Origin: Iphione sp. A-MEVVRFRX5
Lineage: Eukaryota
Length of the DNA: 64,000 bases
Reading direction: 5' to 3'
Assembly (NCBI GenBank): GCA_976226885.1
Contig: OZ320320.1
Span: 29,264,001-29,328,000 of the forward strand
The notes under the pieces are model-generated. The model did no database searches. It was not told where the DNA came from and worked only from the letters and a program-made list of their open reading frames with translations. How positions within the stretch are numbered: position 1 is the stretch's first letter; each line of letters starts with the position of its first letter. This document shows, one piece after another, positions 27,302 to 62,903 of the stretch. Position numbers and translations under genes: made by a program.

Positions 27302-27391
27302 ATGGGCGGAAAGAAGAACTGGGTAGACAAATATCAAGATAGCGACCATCATGTCGATAGGTTTGTCCGCAAAAAGATGGATTACGAAAAG
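27302..27391 (+). CDS. Orphan gene, candidate first coding exon A (MGGKKNWVDKYQDSDHHVDRFVRKKMDYEK)
   Basis: Good Kozak context agcATGG and donor AAG|gtaacg (phase 0). Preceded by a long UTR-like region from about 26.7 kb. Confidence 0.65.
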
Positions 27392-30300
27392 GTAACGGGG
27401 CAGCCATATGCAGGTCAGTCCTTCAATCTTCAACCACAATAATTTATATTAAAACTAAGTTTGGTGATGTAGAGCATTTGCGATGCTTAGACCCTATTAA
27501 GGTGTGTTGAAGACAAGCAAAAACTACGGCACGTTGCTGAGTATATTAAAGAATATTTATGTAGGGATGTTGAGGCTACAGACGACTAGGATCTAGTTTA
27601 TGAGGACGGTTAATGGCAGTGCATCATCTCGATACTTTTGGATGTAGGTCTTTGGTGGATCAGCTCAGTCTTATCTGGATAACGTACTCCTCCCACCATC
27701 AGGCTGTTTCTTGTCTACACATACCAGCAAATGTAGGTCAAAGTGAAAAGCAACGTCAGCACATTTCCCTAGGCAGTATGTAGGTCATTGAAAAGATTTA
27801 TTATCTTCACCCATAAGAATTATACACTTAGTATGGTCGAAATTATCGGTAGAGAGGAACCTCCATGTGTTGCCACTAAACCTTGAATCTGTAGCATCTA
27901 CATACCAGCCTGGTCGTTGTTTCTGGCCAGGATGCAGCATTGCTCTGGCGTGGAAACAGCCAGTGACGCCAAGCATATGCCATACCTAAAAATAGAAGCA
28001 GTCTCCTATTGAAGCGAGTTTGATTATCGCAGCTTGAACAAGTTTCGACCCCACGTGACCTTTAGTATAGTCTGTACCGTCCCTCAAGTTTACTTATTAT
28101 TTACTGGGGGTATAGAAAATAGATCAATTTTTACATGAGTTCATATAGATATATTATTGTCGAAAATATTAGCCTCACAAAATGTAAAAGCTAAGCGTTT
28201 ATTTTCTTACAGTAGCCAAGAAATAGCAATTGATTTGGTATCCTTGAAAATATACCTGTATTCAAGAATACTCAAATATAACGCTAACTAATGAATATTA
28301 TATTCATAAAGAAATTATAAACCGCTGATATATAATATCATACGTAGAAATCAGTGAAGAAATCGAGATTTAGAACTAGGAAGTTTCCCTCATAGGCCTA
28401 TCATATGCTTAGCGGTAGGGAATAGTAAGTGATCTCTATTAAGTAAATAAATTCGACAGTGATATCTTAGTAAATTCAGACAGACTAGAGGGCTGTGTCC
28501 TGTCAGACAGGTATACGTCTGTACACGGTCTAGCATATCTTGAGCCATGTTTACTTGCCTCTTCTAAACAGGCCCATTCCTAGTCGGCCATCGAGGGTCT
28601 CCTATCATGTGAGGTACAGCCAGAGATACTGAATGGTATCCATATCATTCGGGGATAGTGTTTTTCGTACTTTTTACCTTATGGCTCATCACTGGAAAAA
28701 CCAGCACATAGAAAGTAGGAGAAGTAAACAGAAGAGGCTTGTCTCTATTCTGGTATTCTGTAAGTATTGCAGGTGAAGGATTTTGTCCATTTTTTTAGAA
28801 GAGGGGCAGGTAAATATTGCGAATTTTGTGGGAGGTAGTTACTGTCATCAGGAGAAGAGAAATAACCTCTTTGTTTCCATTTTTTACATAAGACTGATGT
28901 GGCTGGCTCGATATTTGTTGGGGGTCAACAAAGATATTTAAGCCAGAATCTAGTTCCTCTATGTTAGAGTTTTAAAACTGTTACATCGGTGGAGGAAACA
29001 TCACATCCAAATGATTCTTCCCGTTATTTTACAGGAGAACAGTCAGGTGACTATTGTATATTGCTGCCTCGTCACTCGTGGATTGGGTTTTGTTACGATC
29101 ACTCTTCTTGTTTTTTTTTACTTAAGCTTGGTGTAACAGTAATGTACAGTAATTCTCCCCTTATCCCACCTTCCTTATCGTTTTTCTTTTAGTTACTTTG
29201 AATCAAATGTATTTTTACACTATCCTCTTTGCTATTGATCATACTTGCTTGACGGTGTGATTGTGTGTACTTATATGTATGAACAGACTTTCCAGTGAGT
29301 GACTCTTTCTGTATACTGCACATATCTGAAGAAGCATGGCCTATGAAGCGTTCATAAATCTCACTCCACCTGTAGCCAACCACCACATGTATAGAACGAG
29401 GAAATACTCCACTTTGTCCCACTCATTGTATTAGAATACATTTCCCTTCTTGCAAGTTTTCCTTAGTGCATGAGACATGAAACAACACAACACCAGCTGT
29501 ACATCATACATCATTAACCACATTAAATAACCACTCAACTCTGTATATCACGAACACATTTTGAAACATTTACAAGAAAACGATCCAAACGTTAATATGT
29601 TTTTAATGCATTATATACCTGTAAATGTAGTAAAGCGAAAAGACTGATGATATACCAGACAGCATACACCTCATTAGCGGTTTGGGATATGGAGCCTGGT
29701 TCCTCCTTGGACTGACACTGATAGCTGACCATATATCACGCATTCATGGGTGAGGGCGAGGATCTGTTTCGTCCTGTCAGGGTTAAATTGGACCCCACCC
29801 CCACCAGCTACAATCTTCCCAAAGGGGCCTTCCTCTCCTTGGCACCCCTCCTAAGCTTTGATACCAGGGAAAGAACACCAGACTAGACTCTCAACTAACT
29901 TTAATTATTTTTGATTGCTTGTATTCAAATACCTAGCCCCAGATCCGTGGGAGCCAAAGAAAAAACCAAAACCAGAGGTAAGTTTATATTCAAGAAGTTT
30001 CAAATGGAGCTGTTTCCCTGTATATATATGTATTGACATTCAGTCTAAGGATCCTTTGATTGACTCCAGCTGTTTGAAGGTCGTTATGAAGAACGGGGCA
30101 CTTTGAAGCAAATTACATAATGTAACTCCCCTTAGCTGAACCAGTTATGGTAGATACTTTGCCGCTTTATATAAGTAATAGCAGCTGTTCTATTAAGTTG
30201 CACTCTGTAAATAATAACATTTTAGTAGGTAGTATAAGTGTTATGGTATAGAGGTAGAAAGTTTCAACTGGTGATTAAATGTATTCCGTCTCTGGAATCT

Positions 30301-33300
30301 TTCCATTTGCCATTAGTTATGTACAGATACTTGGTATCCTCACACTCCTAACAGATCTTGAGAGGCTGAAGAACAAGAACTAGAGAATGATTAGTTACAC
30401 CCTGAAATCACAAAGATAATTATTCAAGTTTCAAGTCCAAAAGGCAGTACGCCGATTAATTAGCTTGATGGGATATACATAATGGCTTTGAATTGTTGCA
30501 AAGGCAGATGATTATTGTTGCACTGGTTTATTATCTGCATCTGTGTAATATACTGCCGTTTAGAAATATCAACCAAAATGATATAACAAGATATGCGTTT
30601 TATTCATCTTCTTTCTATATAAAAAATCATAAAACACGACCATAATACTTAAGGATCTACTGCCGTGGAAAAATTCGTTATTGGGAACTTTGAAGAACCC
30701 CCAATTTCAAGAAAAATGCAGGCTGAAAGGAAAGACTCATGAGCATATGAGAGCCTACTTTTCAAGGAACTTTACTATGTTGGAAAGTCTCTAATCAGGA
30801 CATCCATGTTTTTTCCAAAAATGTCTCAATTGAGACATGTCCCCATAAAGTTAAGAAAAATGATCTATTCTCCTCAGATATGTCCTTATTAAAGGCATAT
30901 TTATAGGGTAGACTTCCCCTATACATCTATATCCTTCAGATTTTCTTTTGTTATACGATCTTAAGTCCCGTAACATGTAAAATATATTTTTAATAATGTC
31001 ATCGAGATGCTTGGGTTGAAATTATCCATGGCTAGTTTAGTAGCGCTTACGTTTTAATTATTTACTCGTTGTATTTCAGAGTTGTTGCAACGACCCAAGC
31101 GATAAAATGGTGTATTTTGCAACTCGGAGGTGCCGGTCCGTGCCACCAACTGTAGGTAAGACCACATTCAAAATGGGTATTATGGCAAATGTGTAAACTT
31201 GCGTCGGAGAACACGAAGCCATGTTCCACCACAATGTACTCAAATGCAACCGGTGAAAACAGAGCTCTATTATACCATGATTTTGCAGTTGTTTTCTCTG
31301 TGTGCGTGGTATGCAGGCATGTGTGGATGGTGTGGATGTGTATATAGGCATGTAAATGTATGTATGAAAGTGTGTATAGGTTTAGATGTGTATATGCCTG
31401 GAGTATGCATAAAGGTGAGTGTGTAGGTTGCTGTATATCTATATGAGTGTGTGTAGATATGTATGTAACTAAGCATGTGTACAGATAATGTAAATTGTAA
31501 GCGCGTGGACGTAGGTATATGTATATGTGGGCATGGTAAGATGTGTATACATAGAGGTATGTATTTAGGTGCGCGTATGTGTGTGGACATAGGTAAGAAT
31601 AAAGGTGTGCTTATACATAGGTATGTGTGTGTGTACCTATAAGGTATAGTTGTGTATGTCTACATGTAAGTATGTGTATGTAGGTGTGTATAGATGTGTG
31701 TGACAGCTTGAGCACGGCTGTCTACGCTTGTCTATCCATGTCCCTGATTTCCGTGTGCTAGGAATCCTCGTTTTACATGTGACTCTGGGAGAGTCCTCGG
31801 TTTTCGTTTACCGCTATCAGTTAATATCTATCGCATCCATCTGTCAAATTAATAGACGTAGGTTGCCTTTAAATTTGGAAAATCATCTGACTTGACATTT
31901 TCATACCATCATAGCCTATACATGAACTGGTCATTTTTGTTTTGCTGCTGGAAAGACTTGGAACGTCAAGAATGTGATTGTTATACTGAAATTTACAAAA
32001 TATGTGTTGTACTATGGACTCTTCGAACTGAGTGATTTTAAGGTTAATAATTTAAAAAAACTAAGTTATAAACGTATCCATGATAGTGTTGAATCCAAAT
32101 CACTGAGATCAGGCACGTTACTGGTGGTGAGGGAACCTGCACACGCTCAGTCCGTTTTGGCCTAAAAAACCTGTGTTTCTGATAACATGCTGGAAAAATA
32201 GAGGATCGGTAGATTTGTTTTCTTTTTTTTACTACTTTTGGATCCTCAAAGCAACAAACATATATATGGTTATATCACCTCTACTGCTTAGATTTTAATG
32301 AAACATGTATCACATGAAAGTCAGTGTTCCAAGGAATAGGCTATAATGGTGGATAGTATGGATAGTATGAATCTGTATCATTATTCACTGTAAAGGTATT
32401 CCCGAAACAAGAAAAATATAAAAAGTTACTATCGGCTTCCAAGTAGGGTCAGTCGGGTTACTATTGACACAGTTATTTTTTTGAGAGGCATAATCATAAT
32501 TGCGGTGGGGAACCATAGATCGCTTAGATCATCTTAATTCAAACGGCCATAAACCATTTGCAGAATAGAGGTATTTAAAAAGTAACTGGAGTAACTTTTT
32601 GATAGTATCTTCCTTCTTTCAACAATCACAATATATACATGTACATGTATAAGTCATCTTGCAGCTCATTCCACCCTACAGGAGTAACCAAATTGGGATG
32701 CTATAATTGATTTCAGTCGAGGTCAACTATGACTACGGGATTGGCCCGGCATCGCGGAAGGCCCACAGGATCTCTCAGTACGTCTCTGATGATCACGACG
32801 CTCTGAGAATGGCCTCCAGGCGGCAGGACGCTGCCCTCCTCCGGGACATTTCCTCCCGTATGGTAAGACACCCCCCCCCCTCCACCCTGATGGTACACCC
32901 CCAAACTCTTGGCTAACAATCACGCTAACCCACCAAGTACATGTAGTTTAGTGTAGTGTAGTCTTAGCAATACTCAATCTAGTGGTTAAAGATTACGAGT
33001 AGAATATGTTACTTCTTCAAGTACATGTCGATCCTTCTATGTTGTTGTAATTAGCTTTTGCATGCACACTCTGATAAGTGTCTCAGTGTGTACAACGTGC
33101 CCTTTAAAAGTAAAATATGATGATTGCAAGATTAAATGAATCATTTCAGAATAGTAAAATGAGAGATTAATTGACCTTTACATCTATTACCTATCAGAAT
33201 AATACGAAGATGTCAATTTTGTTATCTATTATTTTTGTGGACATGTGTGAATCTATGAACATGTTTTGCTTTTGTATAATGAAATGAGTTTATTTTGGAA

Positions 33301-36300
33301 GGGTACAACAAAATCACAAATTTTACCAATTGATATCAGGCTAAGATGTCCACTTGGATAATTATGAATAATCATAAAGCCTTGATCTTGCAGTGTTTGT
33401 GTTGTGTGGGTTGTACATCTGCGAGTTTTGTACCTTTGGGAGTGAGATTCTATTCGGAAACGTCTTTCATCTGACCGCCAAACACAAAGAAACAATCACT
33501 CATTTATTAACTCTAAATGTTTAAAGAATTCTGTGGCAGGTAGATGATAACGACTTCCGAGTAAGAACATACATGTTCTATTTGCATTTTTGTGTGTTTT
33601 GAATGTGATCTTGGTGATCCCTCCATTGTCTTGTAACAAACGGGAGATATGTCCTTCATCTTTGAGACAAGCATGAATCCAGCGAAGCAAATTATTATAC
33701 CACACTATTGTACCGTACCTTGTTCCAATGGATTGTAAATGATCCCCTTAATTATATCCTACCTGTAACGTTCTCTGTTTCGTTTTTCACGAAAAAAATG
33801 CTTGAAAATTACTCTTCCACCATGTCATATTTTACTCAAGTACACTGTAAGAAATTTTCCCCATCTGTGGAGGCATAATTTAAATCTACACTGAAATTAA
33901 CGAAACAACTTTGGGGATCTTTACTGATAAGTAAACCCCACGAAATACTCCATGTATATTAGTGTATAGCTTTGTTCTCCACATATTAGGTGTTCTGTCT
34001 TTTCTAAAGGTATACATGTCGCTTGCATCTATGTCTTAGTTGCTCATAATGCTGTAATGTCTTTAGCTCTAAGACAATGCCTGCGTGTTACATACTAGAG
34101 AGACCGTCCTCGTCATGTCTGGGATGCCCCCGCTGTGTACCCTACCACCTCTACAGGTATCGCTGACATTAACATCTATAGATAGCTGATACATTGTACA
34201 TGTATGTCTGTACTGTTCACTGTGACATACGAAAGAGATTTTTAAAGTTCATAAATGTGTAAATATTTCTAATGTTACGCACAATTTTCTTCTCGAGGAA
34301 AGAATCCTTTTACTTGTGAGGCCATTACTCGTGTAAGACACTAAATGAAGTGGACAATTCATGTGTATGGCCTCATTTTTGTTTCGAGCTACGGATTATT
34401 CTGTCGTGCTCGCCTGCGCTAGACATAATTTTAGTGAAGTTGCATTTTTAAAAAGTAAAGTGAAACTCTTGATAATGCTAGAATGCCAGAGTCACCCAAA
34501 TGTATACATGCACATGTATATGCAGTCAAGATTATTGTACACAGTATCGTCTGGACTATGACAACGTCAAAGTTGATCCTGAGATAGCCATGAAGACGGG
34601 CTTCCGGCGTCTACTTTACCACAAGAAGCGCGCGCCAGTGACCCAGGAAGCGCGCGCCGAGAGGCGACGGGATGAGCTACGTTATCCATGGAACTACACC
34701 AACGACAACTTCTACCGTCGCAAGGGGAAAGCTCGCCACCAGGGCGGTAGCGGCAGCGGCGGCGGCGGCGGCGACCGGGAGGCAGGGGACCGGGAGGAGG
34801 GTTCGAGACAGCAGCTGGCGCTGGCTCTTCTGCAGGCGGACCACTACCCGGAGCACGACCCTTACGGCCTCTACCGGCCCGTCCCCCGCCGTCATCGCCC
34901 AACCCTGCAGGAATACGGAGCTATCGGGGAGGAAGTGAAGAAGATGCCGCTGAGCGAGGTGATCTTCTGGGCGCGCGTACGCTCGGCGCTCGGCTGGAGG
35001 GAGCGCGACCAGGACGAGGAGGATGACGTCACTTTCACGCGGTTCGTGAAAGAACTGGTCCCGCGCTCGGAAGCCAGACCTTACACTCCCAGGTCGCGGT
35101 ACGACTATGACGCCGCCTGCGAGGACGACGAGCAGTTCGCCCAAACGATACGTAAAAAGGTCGCCGCGAGCCGTAAGGATTTGGCGGAGTACAACCGCAT
35201 GCTGGACGCTCGGTTTGGCTGGCGCGGCCGGTCCAGGTTCGCACAGGCCCTGGAGGCGGCGCAGGCCCCATTGGACCGGATGCAGCGGGCGCAGTCGCTT
35301 CCCGCTCGGGCCAGCAGGGCGGCGCCAGTGCGGTCAGCAGGAGTCCAGGAGGTAAAGACTACTGAACTGCTCTCTGGTGTGACCATGGCCTCCGCGTGTG
35401 TGGCCTGACTTTTTGGTTTCTTGCAGTGAACGCTCCTTATGTTAAGTTCAATAACGTAGCAACCACCAACCACCACCACTGTCACCACCACCATCACCAC
35501 CACAAACCACCATTACCATCATCTTCTACAGGCTCCTTACTTGTCTTCAGCACCCTGTACGCCGCCATGGGTGTTGTCTGTCTCTGATCTCCTTCTTGTT
35601 TATTTGCGTGGTATATTTTTAAGTTAACTTGAACTGTGTGTCATTTGACAGATGAGGATGGTCAAATACCCATACTGACTGTGTACCAGTGTGTCCCTTC
35701 GATTGTCAGCTCTCACGCCAGTATATGTATACAGCTTATGTACCTGCGTTAAAAGGTCCAATACAAAACTGCAAGAAAATGTCACAAAATTTTAGAAGTT
35801 GGACTGGAAACAAGGGGACATGTTGATAAGGAGTATATCTGTTCCTCCCGTTGTACCCTTCCAATCCAATTTGTGTTCAGGATGCCAACGTCCTTGTCTG
35901 GTATCGTTGACAGTTTATCTCATCGACAACAGCACCTTTCTTCTCCCGCATTACCCCCTAATTTCTGCCACTCCAGTTGTCCATGTACCTCCTCGAATAC
36001 CATAGCCAATACTTGTGCATCCTTGCCTGTCACCTGGTCTTGCCTTCCTATGTTCTAAAATATATTCCTACATTCCGACATTCATATACATCTGCTGCAT
36101 CGCCCCTGCTACTAGAAGCATCTTTTATAGAACCACTTTCCTACTAGACACGTCCTTTGCAGTTCTAGCCACTTACGACCGTGAAACCTTTAGTTTAGAT
36201 TCGGACCGAGTTCACATCCACTGCTGAGGATGTAGGAAAGCCCATTCCCTTTTAGAAAGATCCAGCCCGCGCTAATCCAGTCTGCCTCCTTTAACTTTGC

Positions 36301-39300
36301 CCGAGCGGCCAATAATTTCAGGGGCAAATAAAAAAAACATCCCTAAATGACCCTTTGCCGTCTGATTGACCTTGTGCGGACCCCTCGTCTCACAGGAAAC
36401 GTCCAGCTACACCCAACCCGCCTGGACTGTGCCCCGACGTGCGCGCGCACGCTCGCCGGTCATGTTCGGCGTGGCCAGAACGAGGCGGGCCAGCAGCGTG
36501 CCGCCTCGTTTTCGCGAGACGGAGGTGGACGAGGAGGAGCTCTTCATGCCCGTTAAGCCCCGAGCGACATACCGCTACGAGGAGGTACCAGTTACTGTGG
36601 CGCCGGAGGGGTGGGCACCCCAAATGCCCAATACCCACCGGACGTGACAACAATAACCCCACACAAAAACAGTTTACAGAGCGCGTGCTTTTTACCGCCA
36701 AAAGCTATAGCTTTTCACTCCATGGCTAATTCAGCTACAACCGCTTCGCCGTTAACTCAGACTGACAGCAAACATGCAATAATGACCGAAATAACCGCAC
36801 CATCCAAGAGGTTGGTCATGCAAACTGCATGTTGACATTTATTCAAGAAAAAAATGAAGAAAATTCAAAGTTAGCTATTATTTGTACGGGAATGATGACT
36901 AATAATCTCCCAGCCGTTTGCTGACAAGCAGGGTGCGACAGTGGCCCAACATAAAACAAGGGAATGAGACACATTCGGTATTTCATTAGTAAATTTTCTG
37001 AAAGAAAGATGAGAAAAGGCGCAGGCGTAAAGATGTCTCCTTGTTGTCTCTCTGTCGTCAGAACTTCAACTGGGCGTAATGTCTGAACCACCCTCTGTCG
37101 ACGCATGGTTCTCTCTGCTTCACTCTATCGTTATGTTTCTCTATCTCTGCCTTCAAGTGAATGTTAACTTGACCCATACATGAGCATTGTTTCTCTCGTC
37201 GACTGAAACTGTATCGTTACATCTCTAGACTGATTGGTCATGCAAGTTACGAAATATGTAAAATTCTTATACATATTATCTATATGATATGTTAAAGATC
37301 ATGTGCTTGAAACTTTCAAGAAATCTTGCTTTTGGGTCATACTATTACAGCTTTTTCTACGTTTACTTGATCTATTTTATCATTATTTTGCATTGTTTTG
37401 GTACTACAGAATGGCAAATGGATATGCAAAATACTTCGTTATCATGCCTGTAGTATCAGTTCTGCTTCACTCATTCATGTATATGTACACATCTGTGTTG
37501 TTCAAACCGATATTTGTAGGTCAAAGCAATGGTAGAGTACAAAGATGGATGGATGGTTTTACAAGTGTAAAATATGGTAAACAAATAATGTACACTTTAA
37601 AATGATAACCTAACAGTGATGTGTTGATGAAATATTCATTATGTTCACAATAACCTCAGCTTTAGCATACATTCAGTGACCATTGATATATATATATATA
37701 TAACATTATTTAAACATGTGGCTAGGGATCAGTTTCATTATTGGAAATGTTTTCTGCAACTGGAGATTAACTGCATGGCATTAGTTTCCTAATGCTTTTA
37801 GAGTACCGTTTAGCAAGGACATCGTCAATATATACGATTAACACGCTTCGTTGTTTTGCTGCCTGCCTCATCTAGCCAATGCATATCCACATGCTGCATA
37901 TCCTAGATAGAAAAGTATCCTGGGAAGATTTTTCCAGATAAAAAAACATGACGAGCAAGTTTGGCCTGAATCGAGGAATGCAAGAGGAATTTAATCGGAA
38001 TATTTGCACATTTCTCTCGCGTATCAAGGACAGTGACAACTTTCACTTTCCACTTCAAAAATATCAGGTTTTGCGCACTCGCTCTGCATCATTTCTGCTG
38101 GCCGTACTGTAAGCCAAAGAAACCTGGTGCATCATGGCAAAGGATAGCTTACCGTGATGATCAAATCGAAGGATTGGTCACCGGCTGGATTAATTAGCTG
38201 TTTGCATCTTCCATTTAGAGTTGATACTAAAAGAAATATCATTCACGCATTTTGACGCACATTTTTAACATTCGGAATGACGTTCGAAGCGCATCGCAAA
38301 GCCACGCCTCCTCCCGCATGGCTGCAACGCCGTGATTGATAACAAGGCAATCGGCCTTTTTTTCTGCCACCAGGGACCGTTCAGTCCTCAATCCTTATGA
38401 TTAATACTCATGTGTTCACCATCATGCCAGGACCTAGCTCTGCCCAACCAACCCGGTTGCATATCCTTTATGAGGTGGTACCTGGCCCCTAACCGAGCCA
38501 TGTTGCCACTTCTTGGTCTGAGAACCCTCTCAGACCGGAAGTAGAGCCTTTTCACTATTGAAGGTGCCGGAACTAGGGGTGGGGGCGGGCGACCGGAGAG
38601 AGTTGGGCAGACGGGTCCCCCTCCAGGGTGATCAATTAGTGACACTTCTCCTTCCTTCCTTCCTTCCTTCCTTCCTTCCTTCCTCCTTCCTTCCCATCTC
38701 CTCTGCCCCCACAAATAAAACGCCGGTTGCTCCAGAAGGACTGGATGCCGTACTACCACAAGCCCATCACCACGTACGTGTCGCACCACGCGCGCCGCCG
38801 CGCCGGAAGCGAGCCGCCCGCCGAACGGAAGACCAGCGTCTACTCCAGCTCGCTGCCTGGCTATATGCCCTCGTCCGAGCTGGCCATGCGGACAGCCCGA
38901 GGAGCGCTCTCCAGGCTCGAGGTAGGGTATCTCTATCACGTCACGTCTTGACAGCGACAGCAAATAAGTATACGGGAGTGAACGGTCTGCCTTGCATTAG
39001 GAAAGCTTGAGAAGGTTCATGAGATGACTGATGGTAATTATAAGAAAAAAAAACCTTGCTCTGATGAATTGTGTATACCTTTTAGGATGGTTCGGATAAA
39101 GAATATGTATCCTTATGCACACAATAATAAAACTTTCCTTTTTTTTTTTTTTTACAAAAAGCAACCCCAACCTCAAAACAGGTAATCGATTCGTTACCGC
39201 AAGAATCTAGAGTAAAAGAAGGGGTTTCCTGTGAGCTCTTGGTTTGAGTCATATTTGCTTACAAAACAGGGCTCTGCAGAATCATCTGGAGACATCGTAA

Positions 39301-45300: not shown

Positions 45301-48300
45301 GTGACGACGATCTGGGTACAGTGGGGCAGCGGGGAACAGAAGGAGTACAAATTACAAGTGTTACAGAGCTGCCGAAGAACCGGCTTGGTTGATTCTGTGT
45401 TTTTCGTCCCGCAGAGGCAGCTCAACAGCTGAATCAGACGGCGAGATGGTGTTCGTGGTGGCTACCCACACCATGGTGGTGGAGGCGGATGCCAACCCTG
45501 ATGGCACGCTGAAGCGCAGGCCGCCGGCCAACTTACCTAAGAGCGATCTACGCGGAAAATGGCAGAAGGAGGATCCCCGTCTGGCTGTTGTACCCAGCCA
45601 GCAAGCTAGCAGTCGGCAAGAAGGTGGTTATACCATCACCACTAAGTCTACCTCGCTCAGGACGAGGGAGGACTACCCGACATCCAGCCCTGGGGTCCGC
45701 TTGGGAGTAGTGGACACCTCCCCGGGCCTTGGGAGTGGCCTAGGGCGCGGCCGCTCCCTCGGTAGACGCGGAGTAGAGGGGGTGCCTACTCGGCCCCGCT
45801 CCTGGTCGGCCGGTCGCAGAGCATCCCTGGCCACCACGGGTGAACTGCTCGCTCATCGGGCCGGCTACACTACGGACTACATGGAGCCTATAAGTACGGT
45901 GACAGAGAAGTTCAAGAGTGTCACCACACGCACGCCCATCCGCACCGGATCGCATATCGCGCCCCGCGAAAGCCCGCCGCGTGAAATGCTGTCCCGTTCG
46001 TACTCCTTGCCAGCATCTGCCATCGAGACAGACCGCGTGCTGCCCAGCGCGGCTGACCTGTATTCGGGAGTGACAGTAACCCGCCGACCACCCGTCTATT
46101 CCTCTGTGTATAGACCGCACCGCCTTCCGCCTGAAACCGAAAGGACCATCGCCATCGCCAAACAGGCGACTGCGGAGGCCCAGGTCTATGGATCCCTGGT
46201 GCCGTACCGGAAGGGCGCGGCCGCGGCTGCCGCCGGCTATCCGGAATATACAGCGATGAGCGCGGCGCCTCGCTCCCCGCGTTCGGTGTCAGCCTACCCG
46301 ACGCTGCATGCGATGGGTGTTCCCACCACCTTCCGCGGTTTGCGGCTCATGGAAGCCAAGCACGAAATGGCTTCGCGCGACTATGACATTCCGATCCGGC
46401 CCTACGAGCCGTACCGGCCTCCGGAGGTCCGCATTAGACCGGCCGACATACCCATAGCTAGGCCCGCGCCGACCCCGCGGAGGATCACACCTCTGGAGCC
46501 CTTTAAGTTGCCCAAGGGCTTCTTCCGGCGTCGCCGACATTCACTTCCGGCCCGTCCTGTCGAGCTGTACACCGACGATGAAGGCTACGACATGTACACA
46601 GCAACACGAGCCAAATTCCTTACTTCCTCACCTAGGCGGACTCATGTACCTTCTGTTCAGGTAAATTTGGATTTTCCCTCGTGTGCCGTGCCTCTCCATT
46701 CTGCCGGAAGTCATAATCCCGTGCGCGCGCAGCCACCAGCCCAAGAGCGAGGCCGTCGCCGGGTATCCGTCTGTTAAGATCTCCATCCGGTTCTTGATGT
46801 TCCTCGCTGTGTGCTCTGCTGTGTAGTTTCGGGTTGTTACAACGTCAGAACAAGTATACATCCAAGGTAGGCTCCAAGCAGCCTTGGTGTCTTCCAAGAG
46901 TGGTTGCATGCCCCATCCTACTACTGTCCAAAAGGCATCTTAACAGGACGGTGATGAGCCTAACCGTCGGCACAATCCTGTTCAAGTGATTACTTCAACC
47001 CATGCAATAACTGCTTGGTGTGTTTATTGTCCCAGAAAAAAACAAAGAAAACCTTCGATTTTTTTGGTGAATAAATAAAATTAGCGATAACATTGACCGC
47101 CTCTCAAAATGCAGACTGTGTAGAACTACTCGTCCATGTATACATGTCCGCATATATGGTGTATATGTGTCTCTCTGTTCGTCTAGATCGTCCAAAACTC
47201 CACTACTTCTTTTCCTTCTCTACACTTTCTACGTACATCCTTAGAATGTCTCCTATCATAAACTTACTTCCAACAAGACCAAGACAAGCATCTTAGACTC
47301 CTTTCTACCCAGGTTACACGGAGTATAGCCTTCTGCAAATAGCATCAAAATATCATCTATCAATAGAAACTGGCACATGACTACTGTCAGAGACCCCACT
47401 GACACTGTCAATAAAGATGACCTTGTACCACGCCTACATGCATTAGTCCAGACCGGTGAGGCAAAAATATCTGGCCTCCAGAAACAACTCCTCTCCATGT
47501 GGCGACACGTCAAAGTTGAAGATAATGGTATGAAGAGCATATTTCGAAAGGTCTGTTCTGTGATCCCTTTGCAATATACAAAGCAGAAATGTCTGTTGTA
47601 TGTATTTTGTCTGATATTCAAGAACATTTTGAACACGAATCCCAACTCTAACAGAGCATAATATTTTGTTGAGCATCTTCTGAAGGTTGGATTCTGAACA
47701 TAATGGGTAGGCGCATTATACTATATTTTTTCGGGGACCTATCTTTCTGTAAGATAAGACACTGCGCGGTTGCCTTCTCTGGCTTGATTAAATCTTCCTG
47801 TTGGTGAATACTGGCCTACATGCCTAACAGGTTTCATCAATAACAGGAGCGACTGCTTACACGGTAAACAGTTCTTTCGTCGACTCCAGTCTACCCTCGA
47901 GCAAAAGGTGTATGCCTGAGCATATTATCTGTTTGTGTTGATTGGTTTTTTCTCTGTACGGGCAATGCGGAGGCAAACAGATGCAAAAATGAGCTCGTCT
48001 AGTCCACCAGGTTTGTTTTTGTATGTATGAGCTTCTTTTGAAACGAACGGGTAATTCCCTTCTGGAATTATTCTTTGTGTCTTCTATCTTTTCAACAAAA
48101 ATTGATTAAGGGAAATGAATGACCGAAAATTAGTGGAAAAGGCAAGGCAGTGTTTCAAAAGCAGCTTTATGGTGTCGAGCTTAAGAATGCGGGTAAAGAC
48201 AGAAAAAGGTAAATTGATAAAAACAGAGCAACAGAACCAAAGGCAAAATGGGAGACAGAAGGGAAAGGGAAAGGGTAGAAAGGTATGAAGGAAGAAAGAC

Positions 48301-51300
48301 AGTGGGGCGACAGAGAAGAAAGGAAAGACAGAGAAGGTGGAAGACAGAGAGAACGAGGAGTAGAGCTACTCCTCGCGGGTGGTAGATTAGCTCAGCCAAG
48401 GGTAGTCAAGGGTTCCTATAAATACTGACAAGCTCAGGTTTCCCCGCATATCTTAGCTATGTACCTCCTCTATAGTCCATGCAGTTCCCTCTATGTTCTA
48501 GAGACTGCATTAGTGTCCGTACGTAGGCAGTAATACACAGAATAGGTTAGGTACAAGTTTCAATGTCGGGAGCGGTAGTCTATGACACTGAATCGAAGGA
48601 AAAGCAGCCTGGGTTAACCAATATGGTATTTGTAGGGGTTTTTACGAGACATAATTTTGCGTCCGTAATGGGGAGAGAATACCTCCTGATTATTGAACTG
48701 AGATGATCTCTTAAGTTTTCTGCGGAATTGCACATCCATTGTTTTTTTTGGTATGGAGGCCTTAGGTCGTAAATCCAAACAGCGGAAGTGTTTAAAGACC
48801 AAGCTGCACAAACCCTTTTTCTTTTTCAAAAGTATACACAATATGTATCAGGGGAGTAACGTATGGTTGAATCTAAAGGAGAGTAAAGTAGAAAAGGCAG
48901 TTATAGGCAACGCTTGAACATTATATCATCTGTAATTACTTCAGTGTATGAAAGAGGATAGGCTTTCAACTAATTTTCCTTTTTAATCGCACTTCTCTGC
49001 TGCTATGAAAACATTATAGACACATGATAATTCTTCCTCATGGGCTGACCCGTACTGTTCCATTGGGATATCATCATAACAATAGACACTGATTTCAGGA
49101 TAAATCAAAGCCACAAAACTGATTAACGTTATAAGAACTTAACGGTATGTAAGTCTTCGTGCACAAAAGGAACCATATTTCATTTTGTTTTGTTAATTTT
49201 GGTTCACTGCCTCCTTGCTGACGTTCCCTGAATGCCCCTACTCTGTGTATTATGAATTTTATACTCAAAGTCGAATAATGCATTCAGTCACCGTGGAGAC
49301 ACGATTCGAAGGGCGACGCGCCGCCTGGAGGTCTTCTATAGGTGTTAACCAATCATGTGACCGTCTGCTTCCATTTTTCTCCACCAGGCGTACGAGCACA
49401 GCGTGCCCACGTACTCGGTGACCCACGTGCCGCGTTCGCCCACCGTGCCGCGCCGCTCTCGCGCTGCTGCGATCGAGGTGAGTGTCCATCTTTATCAATC
49501 CGCGGCTGCTGAACTGTCTCTGCACCTCTTCTTCACCCATACCCACTCAGAGATCTTCAGTTTGCTCATCTCTCATCTACCTGTAACGTCATTCGTCATC
49601 AACCGTCACCAAAAAGACTGATTTCAAAATATGCTAGTAAAACATGAAGTCACAGTAGAAATGCCCCAAGAGACTTCACTTTTGACCAGCCTGTTTTCTT
49701 GTCCTCCTGAAGTTTATTTCCTTAATTTTTAAGATATGATGGATTGTCATCTTTGGTTCTGAAAGTCTCGGTCTTTATCAAGCTGTGGTTTCCTATAGGA
49801 GTTTTTCATTCAGTAGGTTTCTGCTGTAATTGTAAATGCCTAAGCCTATTTCACTGATTTTTGAATTTTCCCGCTTGTTCATGCAATGCCAATATCGTTA
49901 TCTATAGGCAAAAACCATACGACTTCTTCACTCTTTGTATTATGATTTTTTCCTTTTACATTTGCTGATCGATTCTTAAGAATAGTGAACACATTCTGAT
50001 ATTTCAGACCAAACGGAGTTCTAAGGTGGGTTATACTAGTGAGAAAATTAATGGAGTTTTTGAATTTTTATTCAATTGTTTTTCACGAAATTTCGCCAAT
50101 GAAATGTAGGAAATCTGCTTAATTTTTCATACTGTCGCTACATTGTTTTTCACGGAGCTGTGAACCAGCCAACCTAGATGAATTTAAGAGAAATAGTCCT
50201 TTTACATGCCCCCCTTTTAATGCTTAAACTAGTCCCTAATTGTGGGCCTCCTGTGTGACCATCTTGCTATAAATACATGCTCGCATCACGCACGTATTAT
50301 GCACTTATACACACATGGATACAAGACCTTACTATCCATGTGAATGTATTTCTCGTCCATGCTCATGCCTCTCTATATACGAATACGCAAACGTGAATAT
50401 CGATGCTGTGCCTGCTTTTTCACGCATACGGATAGGTCGCCGAATGACGCACATGTGGAGGTTAGGGCTATAGTCCAGATGGTATGTACACTAAGGTGAT
50501 AACTATTTTTTTTCGGGTTTTCGCTGAAGGCACGGCTGGAGGCGATGACCATACCGGACGTCCCCGTAACATCCTATGCCGGACTCCGCTCCCGCGCTGC
50601 CGAGGCCCGCAGTAAGATTGACCATCACAAGGTGCTGCTCGACCGCTACATGCCCGTTCGCCTGGGGCCGGAGCCCGAAGTCGGGTATGAAGTGGAAAAA
50701 AAATATGACGAGCTGGCCGCCAGGTACACTCGGTAAATGGCAGGATGTTGGTGTGCCAAGCTGAGCGGTCGCAGTCGCCAGCCCTTTAAACAAAAAAACA
50801 TTGTCCCGAAAATCCTTTTGGTAAACAACGAACTTGTTCGTAAACCCACTGGATAAGTGGTATTCTTGACCATGCTTGAAATAACGCCGAAAATTCGAGC
50901 CCCAAGTCAGCTGCTTTTAAAATGACGCGATGTGACAATGGAAGAAAAAAAGACCAGTGTGTTTTTTTTCAAAATACACGTTTCATAAAATTTTGTTCTA
51001 AATTCTATTGATCTTTCATTGATCACATGCCTAAGCTGGACCGGCTTTAGTTGTTCTAACCATTTGACAAAGTGTGATGTAATTCATCAGGTACTCTTGA
51101 GTTGATAGGCTCAGATTGACCTGCCGTCTGTATATTTCTAGCTTCTTCGGGAGGATAATATGGCCAACACCACTCCGTTAAACATTTACCGTATGGCTTG
51201 GTAAAGTGTTCCCACCCATTTTCACCCTCCACATTTACCGATAGTAACAGTTAACATGGCCTGGCTTTTCATGACGCCCGCACTCTCCCGCCAATATACC

Positions 51301-54300
51301 GATATAGAGCGCACCAACATCCTACACCATTGGTTTTTCTTAACTACATGTAGATAGTAAAGATTAGTCATAGAGAAGGTAAAGCCAACCCCAGCCGTTG
51401 TTGGGCTGAGGTGCTTTGATAACGAAGTATCAGTGGTTGATATTGATATCTAACGCTGCTTCAAGTTGATACATCTTAGGTGAGACATGTCATTTGAGAA
51501 CATGTTTTAACATTAATGTGTACGATTCATGATGTTTTCAAATCATGGTGGTTTCTGATAGACCGACTAGAATGCACGTCACCTTGAAATATACTCTTTA
51601 GAAGAGATGAAAACACAACATGAAATCTCAAAGTTTTGACTGATAACCACTTTTTGAAAAAATTGTCCCATTTTATCGTAACACTTACAATTCACCAAGA
51701 TGAGATGTACGTTAATGAAATCCGCGACAAATAATTCAGAATAGCTAGAGTAATTTTGAATTATGGTCGTACCAACAATTACCAAAGCATGCCGTATAGA
51801 ACTTGGTATATTGCTGCTACAGCTTGCTTCCCGCCCCTGGCAAGGGAAGCCAACCCAGCTTCTTTATCCTAGGTTAGTTCTTTATCGCTTGTATCGCAGC
51901 AAACCACTGGACGTTGGCCTTCAACTCAAGGTACACGTATCTATTCACAATTGACCACCCAGCTACAGAGGATTCTACTCTAAATTTTCTTGCAATGTCC
52001 TCTGATGATGTGTGTCTCGTTTCTTTCCCATATTTTCCAAATTTTTCGCAACTATCATTTTTCCTATAAAAATAATCTTATTTTCATTTTGCCTCGTGTA
52101 AGTTGGCTTTCTCCATTACCATAAGTGGTCTTTGGTTTCTGTTAAAGTCTGCGTCCAAGTCATCTATATTGGTCCTCTCTGCACGCAAACTTTTTCTTAT
52201 CTATACTGTCTACATGTTAACCACACTATCACTGCCCTGTAGCTGGGTTGCGTCGCTCTGTCGCCACGAGCAGAGCTTTCTCTTGTCACTAATGACAGCT
52301 GCTCGGCCGGCACATCTCTTGTACCGTCTAGAATGCCGGAGCTGCAGCGCTACAAGGGTCGGCCCTCGCCCGCCCCGGCTCCTAAGGTGACTCCCTACCG
52401 GCCGGCGCCCGCCTCGACGCGCAGGAGCAGTCTGCCCCCCTCCGAGCCCAGCAGGGTAAGCCACCGAGTGCCACCTTCTCCAGTATGATGGCGCCAATAT
52501 GAACTTGTGACATCCATGGCGCCAGGCGCTGCGAATATGTACTTGCGTCAAGACTAGAGAGACCATCCCGCACCTTTCATAGTCTGCACATACGGACGCT
52601 AGGCGGTGCCGTAGGTCTCGAATAAACTTAAAACGCCATGTACTTCTGTACATAATGCACCCAGTGCGTATCGAAGTGATGAGGCTGAAGCTGCAAGTAA
52701 ATCTCTAGCATTAAATATACATGTTACTACATAATCGTCTGCGTGAAGATAATTGTATCAGAAAAATTTCAAGATATTGTTGTCAATGTTGTTGATGTTT
52801 CGTTTGTTAATGTGACAGTCCGGCCACCTGTACGCTACTCGAGACAGAAGGGTAACTAACCCCTTTATCTCCAGCGCTGCTCGGTGATATAGATGTTTAA
52901 CAGTAGCAATATTTATCACATTTCAGCACCAGGAACATTGATCAAAATGTGGTACCAGTAATGTTCGCTTGACCTTGTGGTGAGCAGTGCTTGCCATTCC
53001 TTGGCACCAACATTGGGTACCACCCCGTTCATACCGGACACAGAAATGAGACTTGAATAGCACCAGTACATATCTCTATCCTAGGTACAAGTTCAGTGGA
53101 TTTATTGTCATAAAGGCAATTTAGAGACCTCTGCTATTTCATTCGGAGGCTATTTAGGATAATTGAGCTTGTGCCAAAGCAGCCCACAAGCCACATCGTT
53201 TCACCTGGATGTAGGCAAAGACAATGCAGACGCCTCGGTTGGTCGCTGATGTCCAAACGGGTAGGCAAATGTGTGGCCCACAAAATTAAAGACAGCCCCC
53301 CCCAGAGGGTTCATGCGATACACAGCAGCATGGCTCTGTTGTTGATAGTATTTTCTTACTAAAGTCATTCTTGATTCGGTTCGGTTCTTAGTTATTACAT
53401 TTATTATTCTCTGTTTTGGTCATTTGCGTCTGTACTCACAGTGCACGTTCGGACATCAACGCTGAGGCTAATGCTTTGGAAATGGTTCGGCGCATGTCAT
53501 AGTTTCCTCCATCCTGTCATGTCCATCAAAAAATACACACGGTTTATACTTCTTTATGGAAGGGCCGCATGGAAAAGGTTCCCGAGCGCATGAACCGTTA
53601 CAAAAGAATAGCCTATTCATCCACTGTTGCCAATTGGTGTTTGTCGTTCCCATATATTTAAGCCAAAAAAAGCACCACCTAGCGCCATTACTTTGGGACG
53701 GTTGTGAAATAGTCTTACTAAACAACAAGCGCGTTCATTAAAATCTTATGCGTAGCTCATGCTTTCCCATTAGTCAGTGTGTGACCTTCTTAACTGGCTG
53801 ACAGACCATTATAGTGTCCCGGTACTAGTGTTTAACCGAAAGACCCGAATTAACATGACCTTACCTTTTTGGCAGGCGGCGCCGCAGCGGCCTCAGAGAC
53901 CTCCTATGTCTGATGCTCGCAAGAGAGCCCGTGAGGTTCTATGTAAGACACGGAAGGACCCCGAGTACTTCACTTATTAAACACGTCTACTCGTATCCCA
54001 CCCACGGTGAGTGCCTCTCGTTATCTCGCTCTATTGTCCTTCGATCGGGTCTTCTTGAAATTCTCCATTTCAGCCTTCTCCCTCTCGATTTTACAGACAA
54101 CAGATGTGCAATATCAGTGAAGGATAGGTACGCATTGTCATCTTATCTTCCCTGTCTCTTTTATTTTGTCTTTCAGAAGCCTGGTGGTCACCAGCTGGCT
54201 TCATCACGTCCTCGTTGAGATCCAGGATCCCCTCTTACATGATTCGCGATGACATGGTTCCGATTCGTCGTTACTGGAAGAGATACACGGGCGCCCCCAC

Positions 54301-54322
54301 CACCTACTACATCAGTTATTAA
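27302..54322 (+). CDS. Uncharacterised multi-exon gene; low-complexity R/Y/P/S-rich protein. Reference model join(27302..27391, 31080..31155, 32717..32862, 34545..35351, 36396..36584, 38736..38921, 40405..40500, 42343..42353, 45415..46660, 49388..49477, 50530..50732, 52332..52455, 53876..53980) = 3369 nt, 1122 aa; alternative last exon 54177..54322
   Basis: Thirteen mostly GC-rich islands, each with AG/GT boundaries, chain with matching phases into one open frame. Composition is consistent across exons and RxxSxP motifs recur. No recognisable globular domain. Confidence 0.75.
27493..27502 (+). promoter_or_regulatory. CArG (SRF) box CCTATTAAGG about 100 bp into the first intron of the orphan gene
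   Basis: Perfect CC(A/T)6GG; several such sites are expected by chance in this window. Confidence 0.25.
27986..27995 (+). promoter_or_regulatory. Canonical MEF2 site CTAAAAATAG between candidate first exons of the orphan gene
   Basis: Perfect match, but a chance occurrence in 64 kb of AT-rich DNA is not unlikely. Confidence 0.3.
29746..29977 (+). CDS. Orphan gene, candidate alternative start B: join(29746..29749, 29937..29977) = MAPDPWEPKKKPKPE
   Basis: ATG G|gtgagg, a 187-nt intron, then tag|CC and GAG|gtaagt. Ends in phase 0, compatible with exon 31080. Confidence 0.55.
31080..31155 (+). CDS. Orphan gene exon SCCNDPSDKMVYFATRRCRSVPPTV (not in the ORF track)
   Basis: tatttcag| ... G|gtaaga, phase 0 to 1; contains RCRSVP. 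Confidence 0.75.
31300..31705. repeat. Degenerate TG/TA-rich simple-repeat tract
   Basis: About 400 bp of gtgtatatg/gtatgt variants. Confidence 0.85.
32159..32490. mobile_element. Older, inverted copy of the same MITE family as 58418..58742
   Basis: Both ends align in opposite orientation (GGCC.AAAAAA..TGTTTC.G.TAACAT...GAAAAA.TAGAGG.TCG; GACCCGAC.GACCCT). The TSD is degenerate. Confidence 0.6.
32717..32862 (+). CDS. Orphan gene exon VEVNYDYGIG...LLRDISSRM
   Basis: atttcag|TC ... ATG|gtaaga, phase 1 to 0; GC-rich island. Confidence 0.82.
34545..35351 (+). CDS. Orphan gene exon, 269 codons (YRLDYDNVKV...RAQSLPAR...SAGVQE)
   Basis: Within the 302-aa ORF 34500..35408; acag|TAT and GAG|gtaaag; strong GC3 bias. 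Confidence 0.88.
35460..35522. repeat. (CAC/CAA/CAT)n trinucleotide repeat
   Basis: Directly visible. Confidence 0.8.
36396..36584 (+). CDS. Orphan gene exon ETSSYTQPAW...RRASSVPP...YRYEE
   Basis: tctcacag|GAA ... GAG|gtacca (weaker donor), phase 0-0. Confidence 0.8.
38650..38696. repeat. (CCTT)n microsatellite just upstream of the acceptor at 38735
   Basis: Directly visible. Confidence 0.9.
38736..38921 (+). CDS. Orphan gene exon KDWMPYYHK...RRAGSEPP...LSRLE
   Basis: ctccag|AAG ... GAG|gtaggg, phase 0-0. Confidence 0.82.
40360..40500 (+). CDS. Orphan gene exon; either internal (acceptor before 40405, RELKSGLEDPYYDVEDYF...SDLG) or an alternative first exon from ATG 40360; in-frame alternative donor after 40530
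   Basis: ctcttgcag|CGG, GGG|gtgagt and CCC|gtaagt. In-frame stop upstream of ATG 40360. Confidence 0.75.
42343..42353 (+). CDS. Candidate 11-nt micro-exon (ATT CAC CCG GG) of the orphan gene
   Basis: gtttttatccccag|ATTCACCCGGG|gtgagt. It provides exactly the phase 0 to 2 bridge needed between 40500 and 45415. Confidence 0.55.
44744..45137 (+). CDS. Candidate alternative or degenerate exon of the orphan gene (RRKAQSEDVYASGRK...SASLH*)
   Basis: Phase-2 acceptor tcgcag|A, GC-rich, 130 open codons. The reading frame and donor are ambiguous. Confidence 0.4.
45415..46660 (+). CDS. Orphan gene largest exon (1246 nt; RSYSLP and RRHSLP motifs)
   Basis: Within the 462-aa ORF 45389..46777; ttttcgtcccgcag|A and CAG|gtaaat. 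Confidence 0.88.
49388..49477 (+). CDS. Orphan gene exon AYEHSVPTYSVTHVPRSPTVPRRSRAAAIE
   Basis: tttttctccaccag|GCG ... GAG|gtgagt, phase 0-0. Confidence 0.85.
50530..50732 (+). CDS. Orphan gene exon ARLEAMTIPD...KYDELAARYT(R)
   Basis: gctgaag|GCA ... CG|gtaaat (phase 2). An alternative phase-2 donor lies after 50723. Confidence 0.83.
52332..52455 (+). CDS. Orphan gene exon (R)MPELQRYKGRPSPAPAPKVTPYRPAPASTRRSSLPPSEPSR; 124 nt (3n+1)
   Basis: ctcttgtaccgtctag|A ... AGG|gtaagc, phase 2 to 0; this frame is not in the ORF track. Confidence 0.78.
53876..54006 (+). CDS. Orphan gene 3' exon; frame 0 ends AAPQRPQRPPMSDARKRAREVLCKTRKDPEYFTY* (stop 53980); the +1 frame is open to the donor at 54007
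   Basis: cttttggcag|GCG acceptor and CG|gtgagt donor. Confidence 0.8.
54177..54322 (+). CDS. Orphan gene last exon; coding as (E)AWWSPAGFITSSLRSRIPSYMIRDDMVPIRRYWKRYTGAPTTYYISY* in one isoform, 3' UTR in the other
   Basis: Long pyrimidine tract plus cag| acceptor; 48 open codons with the same R/Y/P composition as the other exons. Confidence 0.65.
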
Positions 54323-56782: not shown

Positions 56783-57807
56783 CTAGAACTTTGTGACGAT
56801 GCTTGGTGCTGGATACGCCATCTGTGAACTTTGTTGAGGCATATCGTGCTCAAAAGCAGGGTTGATATACTCGCCATTTTGCATGCTACTGGCAAAGTCA
56901 TTAGAACGACCAGACACCGTGGTCACTTCTGTTAAGCCGCCATTTTTGGCTACCATGGACAATGCCTTGTCTCTCTCGGTGCCCGGTCGGTAGCAGATGT
57001 TATCGCAGCATTTGCAGAAGAAACAGGCTCCAAACATCCTGTCGAGAGGTGCAAGCGAACGCAGTGGCTCGGGAAGCCACATCCACGTCCGCAGTGTCTC
57101 CGGAAGCATCTGCGGTCGTTTCTTTTGCAGAATGTTGACAATGATAACGAAAATAATTATTAGCACTACGGGTATGCCAACCGCTGCCAGGACGTACCAC
57201 CCAATCACGGAGAGTGCGAAGACAATGGCGGGAAGCGCGAAGAATATTAAGATGATATAGAATATAGCAAACCATCTGTAATCGGCTGTTATGTTACCCA
57301 GGCCCTTAGCCAACTTGATCGGAACTTTCCTCATGAATGGGACCGGATACCATAAGATGATGCCGACGAGATTGAAGAAGAGATGACACATAGCAATCTG
57401 CATGCTATTCCTGAAGCTGTCGCCTGATGTGGCGAGAGCAGCCAGCACGCTGGTGCAGGTAGTACCGATGTTAGAGCCAAGAGTGAGGGGGTACATGCGT
57501 TCCAGGCTCACCATACCTATACCCACAAGTGGTGTGAGTGTGGAGGTAAAAATCGAGCTGCTCTGGACAAGGATTGTCATTCCAGCACCGATCAGTATGG
57601 CGACGTAACCCGTCAACCAGGACAGGTAGCCTGGAAAGTTGGCATTGATAACCTTCTTGATGACGAGTGCCACCTTGCCCTTAAGCATGGCCTGAAGAAG
57701 CTTGACGATGAGGAGAAGGCACATGGTCAGGATGAGAAGCGAGAAGACCAGGAGGACTCCGCCGATGACAGCGTCGGGCCAGTCGACTTGGGAAAATAGA
57801 GCCTGGC
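56783..57807 (-). CDS. SLC34A: SLC34A coding exon 7 (1025 nt, entire C-terminal half)
   Basis: tttcaag|GC acceptor; the ORF track 56783..57937 contains the second QSSS repeat, [22 protein letters not shown] and YRWFAIFY. Confidence 0.96.
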
Positions 57808-58025
57808 CTTGAAACGGGAGAATTAAAACGTATGAGTTCCTACATTGCAAGCTAAACAAAAACAAACAACCGTGTCGTCTTATAAACTTTGTAAAGTATG
57901 AAATTCTACTGTACAAAGATGACAGGACATTTCCCAAACGGGGTTTCTACATAAATACTGTCAATGCAAAAACATAGGGCTGAGAGAGAGGGAGAGAGCA
58001 AGATAGGGAAAGAGGTGAGAGAGAG

Positions 58026-62772: not shown

Positions 62773-62903
62773 NNNNNNNNNNNNNNNNNNNNNNNNNNNN
62801 NNNNNNNNNNNNNNNNNNNNNNNNNNNNNNNNNNNNNNNNNNNNNNNNNNNNNNNNNNNNNNNNNNNNNNNNNNNNNNNNNNNNNNNNNNNNNNNNNNNN
62901 NNN
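62773..62903. other. Assembly gap (131 N) in the SLC34A first intron
   Basis: Run of N. Confidence 0.99.

Follow-up and report, generated by a model that had tools for sequence, protein, structure and literature searches.

Does a series of mostly small, in-phase exons that keep presenting the same phosphorylation-type motif, RxxSxP, belong to one gene, and if so, what would the motifs serve for? The question is raised by positions 27302 to 54322 of a 64,000-nucleotide stretch of DNA from Iphione sp. A-MEVVRFRX5 (contig OZ320320.1, positions 29,264,001 to 29,328,000), the whole of which is called the window in the following. A reading of the letters alone, here termed the original prediction, had seen in this span an unassigned, apparently disordered protein and had proposed an exon-modular, phospho-switchable 14-3-3 scaffold. 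As judged by comparison with relatives, the span is one real gene on the plus strand and belongs to a conserved, unnamed eukaryotic (presumably animal) family. We further give somewhat better than even chances to the reading that this one gene has a disordered product, and that its conserved motifs, placed on skippable exons, are candidate phospho-dependent 14-3-3 docking sites.

The gene model was built from open blocks, AG/GT splice sites and comparison with relatives. It comprises 13 plus-strand exons that run in phase and free of stops from the start ATG at 27302 over 1156 amino acids (aa), or over 1105 aa if exon 8 is omitted and exon 9 begun at 45446 (Table 1). The architecture of 13 in-phase exons and the start ATG that had been proposed for this locus are thus kept, whereas the proposed length of 1122 aa is not, as some boundaries differ; the start of exon 7, for instance, now coincides with the conserved acceptor at 40405. 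Canonical AG/GT sites flank every exon, with a weak donor at exon 8 (CCGG^GTGGGA; ^ stands at the splice junction). Exons 4, 5, 6, 7 and 10, and also exon 9 if it starts at 45446, are of phase 0 at both ends. Split codons join exons 2 and 3 as well as exons 11 and 12. The spliced protein consists to 13.2% of R, 9.8% of A, 9.3% of P, 8.0% of S and 5.6% of Y, and an ATTAAA lies downstream of exon 13, at 54318.

That these exons form a single gene follows from the relatives. A word search with exon 9 yielded three exon-like open reading frames (ORFs), P0001-3, with 33-38% identity. The contigs of the relatives are SA (L005 plus L001) and SB (the reverse complement of L006 plus L002), together with L003/L004. 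By tblastn, exons 3, 4, 5, 6, 7 and 9-13 were located in SB and exons 4, 5, 6, 7, 9, 11 and 12 in SA, in both cases in the order and on the strand seen in the window. Profile searches with exon 4 and with the full-length protein, run within length bounds (148-472 and 257-817 aa) that longer annotated relatives could escape, added two further genomic relatives, P0007 (located on L009) and P0009 (on L010), as well as short contigs of JGI or Logan samples which lack introns and have the look of spliced transcripts (P0005, P0008, P0013-P0018). Altogether, 12 of the 13 exons have counterparts, either as colinear exons in eukaryotic contigs or in the relatives' spliced transcript-like contigs; only exon 8 has none in any relative examined.

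Exon 1 matches the N-terminal end of P0016 (SDHH[VI]DR.VRK) with 50% identity over 30 aa; there this segment is joined to sequence resembling exons 2 and 3, and P0016 alone among the relatives found holds a counterpart of exon 2. Exon 3 is 65% identical to SB and occurs also in L009, L010, P0005 and P0013-16. Identities to SA and SB amount to 37-45% for exon 4 (about 29-35% with further relatives) and to about 60-75% for exon 11, and exon 13, which is 79% identical to SB, forms the common C-terminus of transcripts P0008 and P0014-18. The splice junctions are conserved as well: transcript P0005 matches gap-free across the junction of exons 3 and 4, with the same join as in the model, and the split codon between exons 11 and 12 agrees with the relatives' transcripts (..ELVDR^MPELDPY). 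The exon 6 donor GAG^GTA and both the acceptor and the phase-0 donor of exon 7 are kept in the window, SA and SB; RELG.. opens the matching exon 7 in L009 and in transcripts P0008, P0013 and P0015, and the exon 9 donor CAG^GTAA is conserved. Moreover, the relatives' transcripts link the equivalents of exons 1-3, 4 and 7 to those of exons 10-13. Colinearity of the exons in distant relatives, together with transcripts that join the N- and C-terminal halves, shows the locus to be one gene.

All seven RxxSxP motifs of the original prediction are present in open plus-strand frames at the positions given in Table 1, and an eighth, the Thr form RSPTVP in exon 10, had been missed. In 20,000 composition-preserving shuffles of the spliced protein, 1.14 ± 1.06 RxxSxP motifs are expected compared to the seven observed (P = 0.0002); for Rxx[ST]xP the expectation is 1.98 against eight (P = 0.0007), and exon-wise shuffles without exon 8 give 1.30 against seven (P = 0.0004). 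The control patterns RxxSxA, RxxAxP and KxxSxP are not enriched in the spliced protein over its shuffled versions. In the mode I pattern of 14-3-3 recognition, a disordered segment presents Arg at -3 and Pro at +2 of a Ser; all eight window sites have R at -3 or -4, S/T at 0, P at +2 and no P at +1.

As the shuffle P-values are post hoc, conservation provides the independent test. The expectation that the SxP motifs are conserved holds in part: four are strongly conserved (RASSVP, RAGSEP, RRHSLP, RSPTVP), two partially (RCRSVP, RRSSLP) and two are not (RAQSLP, RSYSLP). The exon 5 motif reads RASSVP in SA and SB and RASSLP in L009, L010 and P0015, and the only invariant columns of this exon among these five and the window are R..RASS[VL]PP. 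The exon 6 motif is RAGSEP in SA and SB, RAHSEP in L009, RAASEP in L010 and RASSEP in P0015; RA.SEP, invariant in 6/6 sequences, is the only invariant block of that exon. GF.R.RR[HY]SLPARP of exon 9 is invariant in all four species. In exon 10, the motif is kept in 7/8 sequences (RSYSLP in SB, RPGSLP in L009, P0008 and P0015, RTGSLP in P0013, RAGSLP in P0014) and is absent in P0016. That of exon 12 is kept in 4/8 (RRMSLP in SA, RRASLP in P0014, RASSLP in P0016) and is absent in SB, P0008, P0015 and P0017, and RCRSVP of exon 2 aligns with RRAYSVP of P0016. The motifs of exons 5, 6, 9 (RRHSLP) and 10 are thus the conservation peaks of their own exons, in sequences otherwise only 30-45% identical, and the family consensus is R-R-x-S-[L/V/E]-P-P. 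These alignments support the view that the conserved motifs behave as functional short linear motifs.

A further recurring element, [FYW]MP[VYS], is present as had been described, with five copies compared to 0.05 expected by shuffling. The copies (FMPV, WMPY, YMPS, FMPV and YMPV) lie in exons 5, 6, 8 and 11; the exon 11 copy (LDRY[MLT]P[VLI]) is conserved, and one exon 6 copy is so in part (Y[ML]PSS).

The lack of a recognised domain is confirmed: Pfam returned no family on any window exon or on 13 relatives, sequence and profile searches of the PDB with A1, A2, A4 and P0016 as queries found no relative, no source names the relatives beyond 'hypothetical protein', and the ESM Atlas holds no neighbour of the family queries at or above the lead threshold of 0.9. 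Among the candidates rejected, PRRC2/BAT2 (PF07001, BAT2_N) matched exon 9 with 14.6 bits at a cut-off of 25 (E = 0.045) and none of three orthologous exons at E up to 1. Myofilin (PF15929), SPATA6 (PF14909) and ZM-domain proteins appeared as language-model neighbours at 0.79-0.84 only, with no Pfam match at E up to 1; composition is the probable reason why a molluscan hypothetical cluster, myofilin and SPATA6 recur as Atlas neighbours.

Disorder is likewise borne out, as a prediction, with AlphaFold values of 0.21-0.25 for the predicted template modelling score (pTM) and mostly <50 for the predicted local distance difference test (pLDDT). The full-length relative P0014, modelled from 23 aligned sequences, has a pTM of 0.25 and isolated helices with pLDDT up to 93, at residues 39-80 (exon 3 into exon 4), 275-292 (DL.EF..ML, exon 4), 413-437 and 445-462 (exon 11) and 516-529 (exon 13). 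Both of its RxxSxP motifs are found within or next to stretches of pLDDT <50. For window exon 9, the mean pLDDT is 42.6 and the pTM 0.21; its block with RRHSLP averages about 50, just before a stretch below 50 (379-413). Disorder of the motif segments is in all cases a prediction from shallow alignments. The three short basic amphipathic segments reported earlier do exist, each as a conserved helix, but no repeat relationship is detectable among them, as an internal-repeat test gave no significant relation (hhalign P 0.09, 0.13 and 0.25). The protein is therefore predicted to be long and mostly unfolded and to carry a few short, conserved helices, which lie in exons 3-4, 11 and 13.

Are the motif-bearing exons in fact used selectively? 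The L009 genome holds exons 3, 4, 5, 6, 7 and 10 in order. Transcript P0008 (L007), which starts with intron-like sequence, joins the equivalents of exons 4, 7, 10, 11, 12 and 13 and skips exons 5 and 6; it is 75% identical in exon 4 to L009, whose genome holds both skipped exons. P0015, which is closer to L009 than P0008 is, reads exons 3, 5, 6, 7, 10, another exon, 12 and 13 and skips exon 4, and P0016 passes from exons 1-3 to exons 10-13, leaving out exons 4-9. The number of Rxx[ST]xP motifs per transcript varies accordingly, with five in P0015, three in P0016, two in P0014, one each in P0008 and P0013 and none in P0017. Since the skipped exons are present in every sampled genome, alternative splicing is the parsimonious reading. 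The proposal that splicing sets the valency is thus supported for the family, in which phase-0 motif exons are skipped in relatives' transcripts with zero to five motifs, and not yet for this species. Skipping of exon 12 would shift the frame of exon 13 and give a 113-aa unconserved tail ending at 54218; all relatives' transcripts that reach this region have sequence resembling exon 12 in place and the canonical C-terminal tail. At residues ~296-344 of P0015, exon 11 is replaced by an exon that starts like it (SLRSRAAS...), then diverges, and carries RRGSLS and RIPSSP. This exon is probably a mutually exclusive duplicate of exon 11, and tblastn found no counterpart of it in the window.

In the middle of the gene, exon 8 is doubtful: its sole support is the rare FMPV..YR motif common to exons 5 and 8, and the reading frame is kept with or without it. 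Exon 9 is confined to one clade, occurring in the window, SA, SB and L003 only; when 1.84 billion representatives were searched with its profile, only P0001-3 came up, L009 has no block resembling exon 9 between exons 7 and 10, and none was seen in the L009/L010 lineages. The exon contains three conserved islands, at 45446-45480, 45626-45670 and 45890-45934 (MVFVVATHTMVVE, YTITTKSTS.RTRED and STVTEKFKSVTTRTP), with alternating beta-strand-like patterns and low-confidence strands in AlphaFold (block means up to ~62). On its 5' side lies a GC-rich stretch (44000-45446, GC 0.55) in which long ORFs occupy other frames and which together with the conserved exon 9 ATG may represent an internal promoter or alternative start for an isoform of exons 9-13.

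Taken further, this would mean that the span holds more than one transcription unit, with exon 9 opening the coding sequence of an isoform made from an internal promoter instead of being a cassette exon, in which case the full 13-exon protein of ~1100 aa may never be made. In line with this, a conserved ATG of RNNATGG context (AAG/GAG ATG GTG TTC) stands at the beginning of exon 9 in each of the four species, in SA with a stop three codons upstream, and GC is 0.55 at 44-46 kilobases of the window. Exon 7 does not agree in phase with the strong acceptor of the window at 45415/45417, only the weak-context site GAG^ATG fits, exon 8, which would bridge the phase between exons 7 and 9, is unsupported, and no transcript containing exon 9 was found among the relatives' transcript-like contigs. 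However, the AG before the exon 9 ATG is in all species also an acceptor of phase 0, in agreement with the phase-0 donor that exon 7 conserves, L003 has a strong in-frame acceptor 27 nucleotides upstream of the ATG, and the equivalents of exons 1-7 and 10-13 are joined in relatives' transcripts, so that the locus would still be one gene. We consider separate units unlikely. Far less probable still is that the number of motifs simply follows from a composition rich in Arg, Ser and Pro and that the exons are ORFs by chance. The high R, P and S contents and the post hoc choice of the motif would favour such an explanation, but shuffles that keep the global or the exon-wise composition give 1.1-1.3 motifs instead of seven, conservation within the exons is highest in the motif columns, and several species keep both the exons and the splice sites; the chance explanation is contradicted by the shuffles and by motif conservation.

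For the reading as candidate 14-3-3 docking sites on skippable exons, the following mechanism can be drawn up. R-R-x-S-[L/V/E]-P-P motifs are scattered over the chain, mostly one per small exon of phase 0 at both ends, and basophilic kinases (of PKA, AKT or CaMK type, going by the consensus) would phosphorylate the motif serines. 14-3-3 proteins recognise phospho-Ser/Thr motifs in disordered regions, and binding of two sites of one client together raises the affinity by orders of magnitude (PMC12017986). Because phosphorylated sites would dock 14-3-3 dimers, singly or two sites together, signalling and splicing could jointly fix the number of dimers held and, with it, conformation, partners, location or stability. 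Only tentatively, as something possible rather than probable, do we extend this to the family as a whole: it may be a deeply conserved, splice-programmable multivalent 14-3-3 scaffold with one RRxS[LV]PP site per cassette exon, in which exon choice sets the maximum number of dimers (0 to ~8) and kinase activity the actual number, and in which the terminal helices anchor the chain to some structure, possibly cytoskeletal. Of the scaffold originally proposed, conserved motifs and exon-level modularity are thus found; 14-3-3 binding and PKA phosphorylation are read from the consensus.

Several observations weigh against the docking-site reading. Besides the fact that the motif was chosen by eye before the shuffles were run, Glu occupies +1 in the motif of exon 6, and Pro occupies +3 in every motif; RAQSLP of exon 4 is not conserved past a basic-Ser patch (RSSTLY in SA, RARSNL in SB), RSYSLP of exon 9 is not conserved, and RCRSVP and RRSSLP are kept in some relatives only. 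Moreover, the differing exon sets come from different related species, and lineage-specific exon loss may be their cause instead of splicing. The conserved R-R-x-S-[LV]-P-P could also be functional without 14-3-3, either as plain basophilic-kinase sites acting as a charge or conformation switch or as ligands of another reader. Conservation indeed exceeds the 14-3-3 consensus from which the docking function is deduced, with Pro kept at +3 and an extra Arg common at -4, and in L009 and P0015 PPQY/PPRY follows directly after the serine, so that the motif of exon 5 shares residues with a WW ligand of PPxY-like type (SLPPQY, SLPPRY). The PPxY reading fails, however, in the window, SA and SB (PPRF, PPHF, PPCC), and the spacing of Arg, Ser and Pro (-3, 0, +2) within disordered sequence is that of textbook mode I. 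A function apart from 14-3-3 thus appears rather unlikely to us, if well worth keeping in mind.

The coordinates are collected in Table 1. The gene is followed downstream, on the opposite strand, by exons of an SLC34-like cotransporter, and the single run of N in the window (62773-62903) lies outside it. Minus-strand ORFs over exons 4, 6, 9 and 12 overlap GC-rich coding exons and are without support of their own. A (TCCT)12 microsatellite at 38649-38694 ends about 40 nucleotides 5' of the exon 6 acceptor.

Table 1. Exons of the gene and neighbouring features in the window (^, splice junction).
Feature	Position	Strand	Description
Exon 1	27302..27391	+	30 aa, begins at ATG; MGGKKNWVDKYQDSDHHVDRFVRKK...; donor AAG^gtaacg, phase 0
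Exon 2	31080..31155	+	acceptor tttcag^, donor TAG^gtaaga; RCRSVP at 31128-31145
Exon 3	32717..32862	+	conserved ...SRKA.RIS.Y..DD.D..R.ASRRQD..LL.DI..R[ML]
Exon 4	34545..35351	+	269 aa, phase 0 at both ends; RAQSLP at 35286-35303; conserved blocks YRLDFDNVK..MKTGFRR..LRYPWDYT.DN, DPYPEHDPFGLYRPR and helix KKI..SR.DLAEF..MLD..FG
Exon 5	36396..36584	+	phase 0 at both ends; RASSVP at 36486-36503
Exon 6	38736..38921	+	phase 0 at both ends; RAGSEP at 38799-38816; C-terminal helix-like A.R.AR..L.RLE
Exon 7	40405..40500	+	RELKSGLEDPYYDVEDYF...; acceptor TTGCAG^CGGGAG, phase-0 donor
Exon 8 (doubtful)	44707..44830	+	good acceptor, weak donor; holds FMPV
Exon 9	45417..46660	+	~405-414 aa; RSYSLP at 45995-46012, RRHSLP at 46532-46549; other phase-0 start 45446, GAG^ATG
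Exon 10	49388..49477	+	30 aa, strong acceptor, donor GAG^gtgagt, phase 0 at both ends; RSPTVP at 49433-49450
Exon 11	50530..50723	+	LRSRAAEARSKIDHHKVLLDRYMPV..GPE.EVGYEVEKKYDELA
Exon 12	52332..52455	+	124 nucleotides; RRSSLP at 52420-52437
Exon 13	53876..53980	+	C-terminus ...MSDARKRAREVLCKTRKDPEYFTY, then stop
pogo/Tigger-like transposase remnant	9752-10913	-	two ORFs, one with Pfam DDE_1 (E = 2.6e-15)
Na+/Pi cotransporter (SLC34-like) exons	56783-57937, 59374-59721	-	Pfam Na_Pi_cotrans (E = 2.9e-12, 3.9e-6); downstream neighbour

How would such a protein compare to known systems? Members of the synaptopodin family have two 14-3-3 sites, PPxY motifs and splice isoforms. Like the present protein, synaptopodin and myopodin/SYNPO2 are disordered, Pro-rich and without globular domains, and phosphorylation of synaptopodin by PKA or CaMKII creates 14-3-3 docking, which calcineurin removes and which controls the protein's stability (PMC4228912). 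Unlike there, up to eight candidate sites are found here, mostly in separate cassette-type exons, and none of the searches made here gave a sequence relation to the synaptopodin family, synaptopodin sequences themselves not being part of the comparison. In the searches made here, the blocks SDHH.DR.VRK, MKTGFRR, LRYPWDYT.DN, LRSRA..A..K.D.HK..LDRY.P and MSD.RKR.R.V.C.T..DP.Y occur in no named family. Multi-site clients such as tau/MAP2c and the CFTR R region, in which a 14-3-3 dimer can bind two sites per chain or bridges chains to give heterogeneous complexes (PMC12017986; PMC12001206), resemble the present case in having several basophilic candidate phospho-sites on a disordered chain. These proteins have known folded or functional domains and a known cell biology, whereas here the other conserved elements are short helices only. 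Alternative short exons in disordered regions are reported to add or remove short linear motifs for interaction (PMC3424572); different from this general case, the same type of motif is found here on many exons, and splicing would tune the number of sites instead of operating one switch.

What is new is the uncharacterised, unnamed family, the kind of protein being already known. Genome annotation gains from the analysis an exon model that has support, and exon-level ORFs of several public assemblies are recognised as belonging to a single gene family; the value of the work otherwise lies mainly in a well-defined hypothesis. If the motifs bind 14-3-3, the family would be an unusually clean natural case of one docking motif per exon with a valency set by splicing and kinases, and a conserved family without a name in any database would gain its first functional handle.

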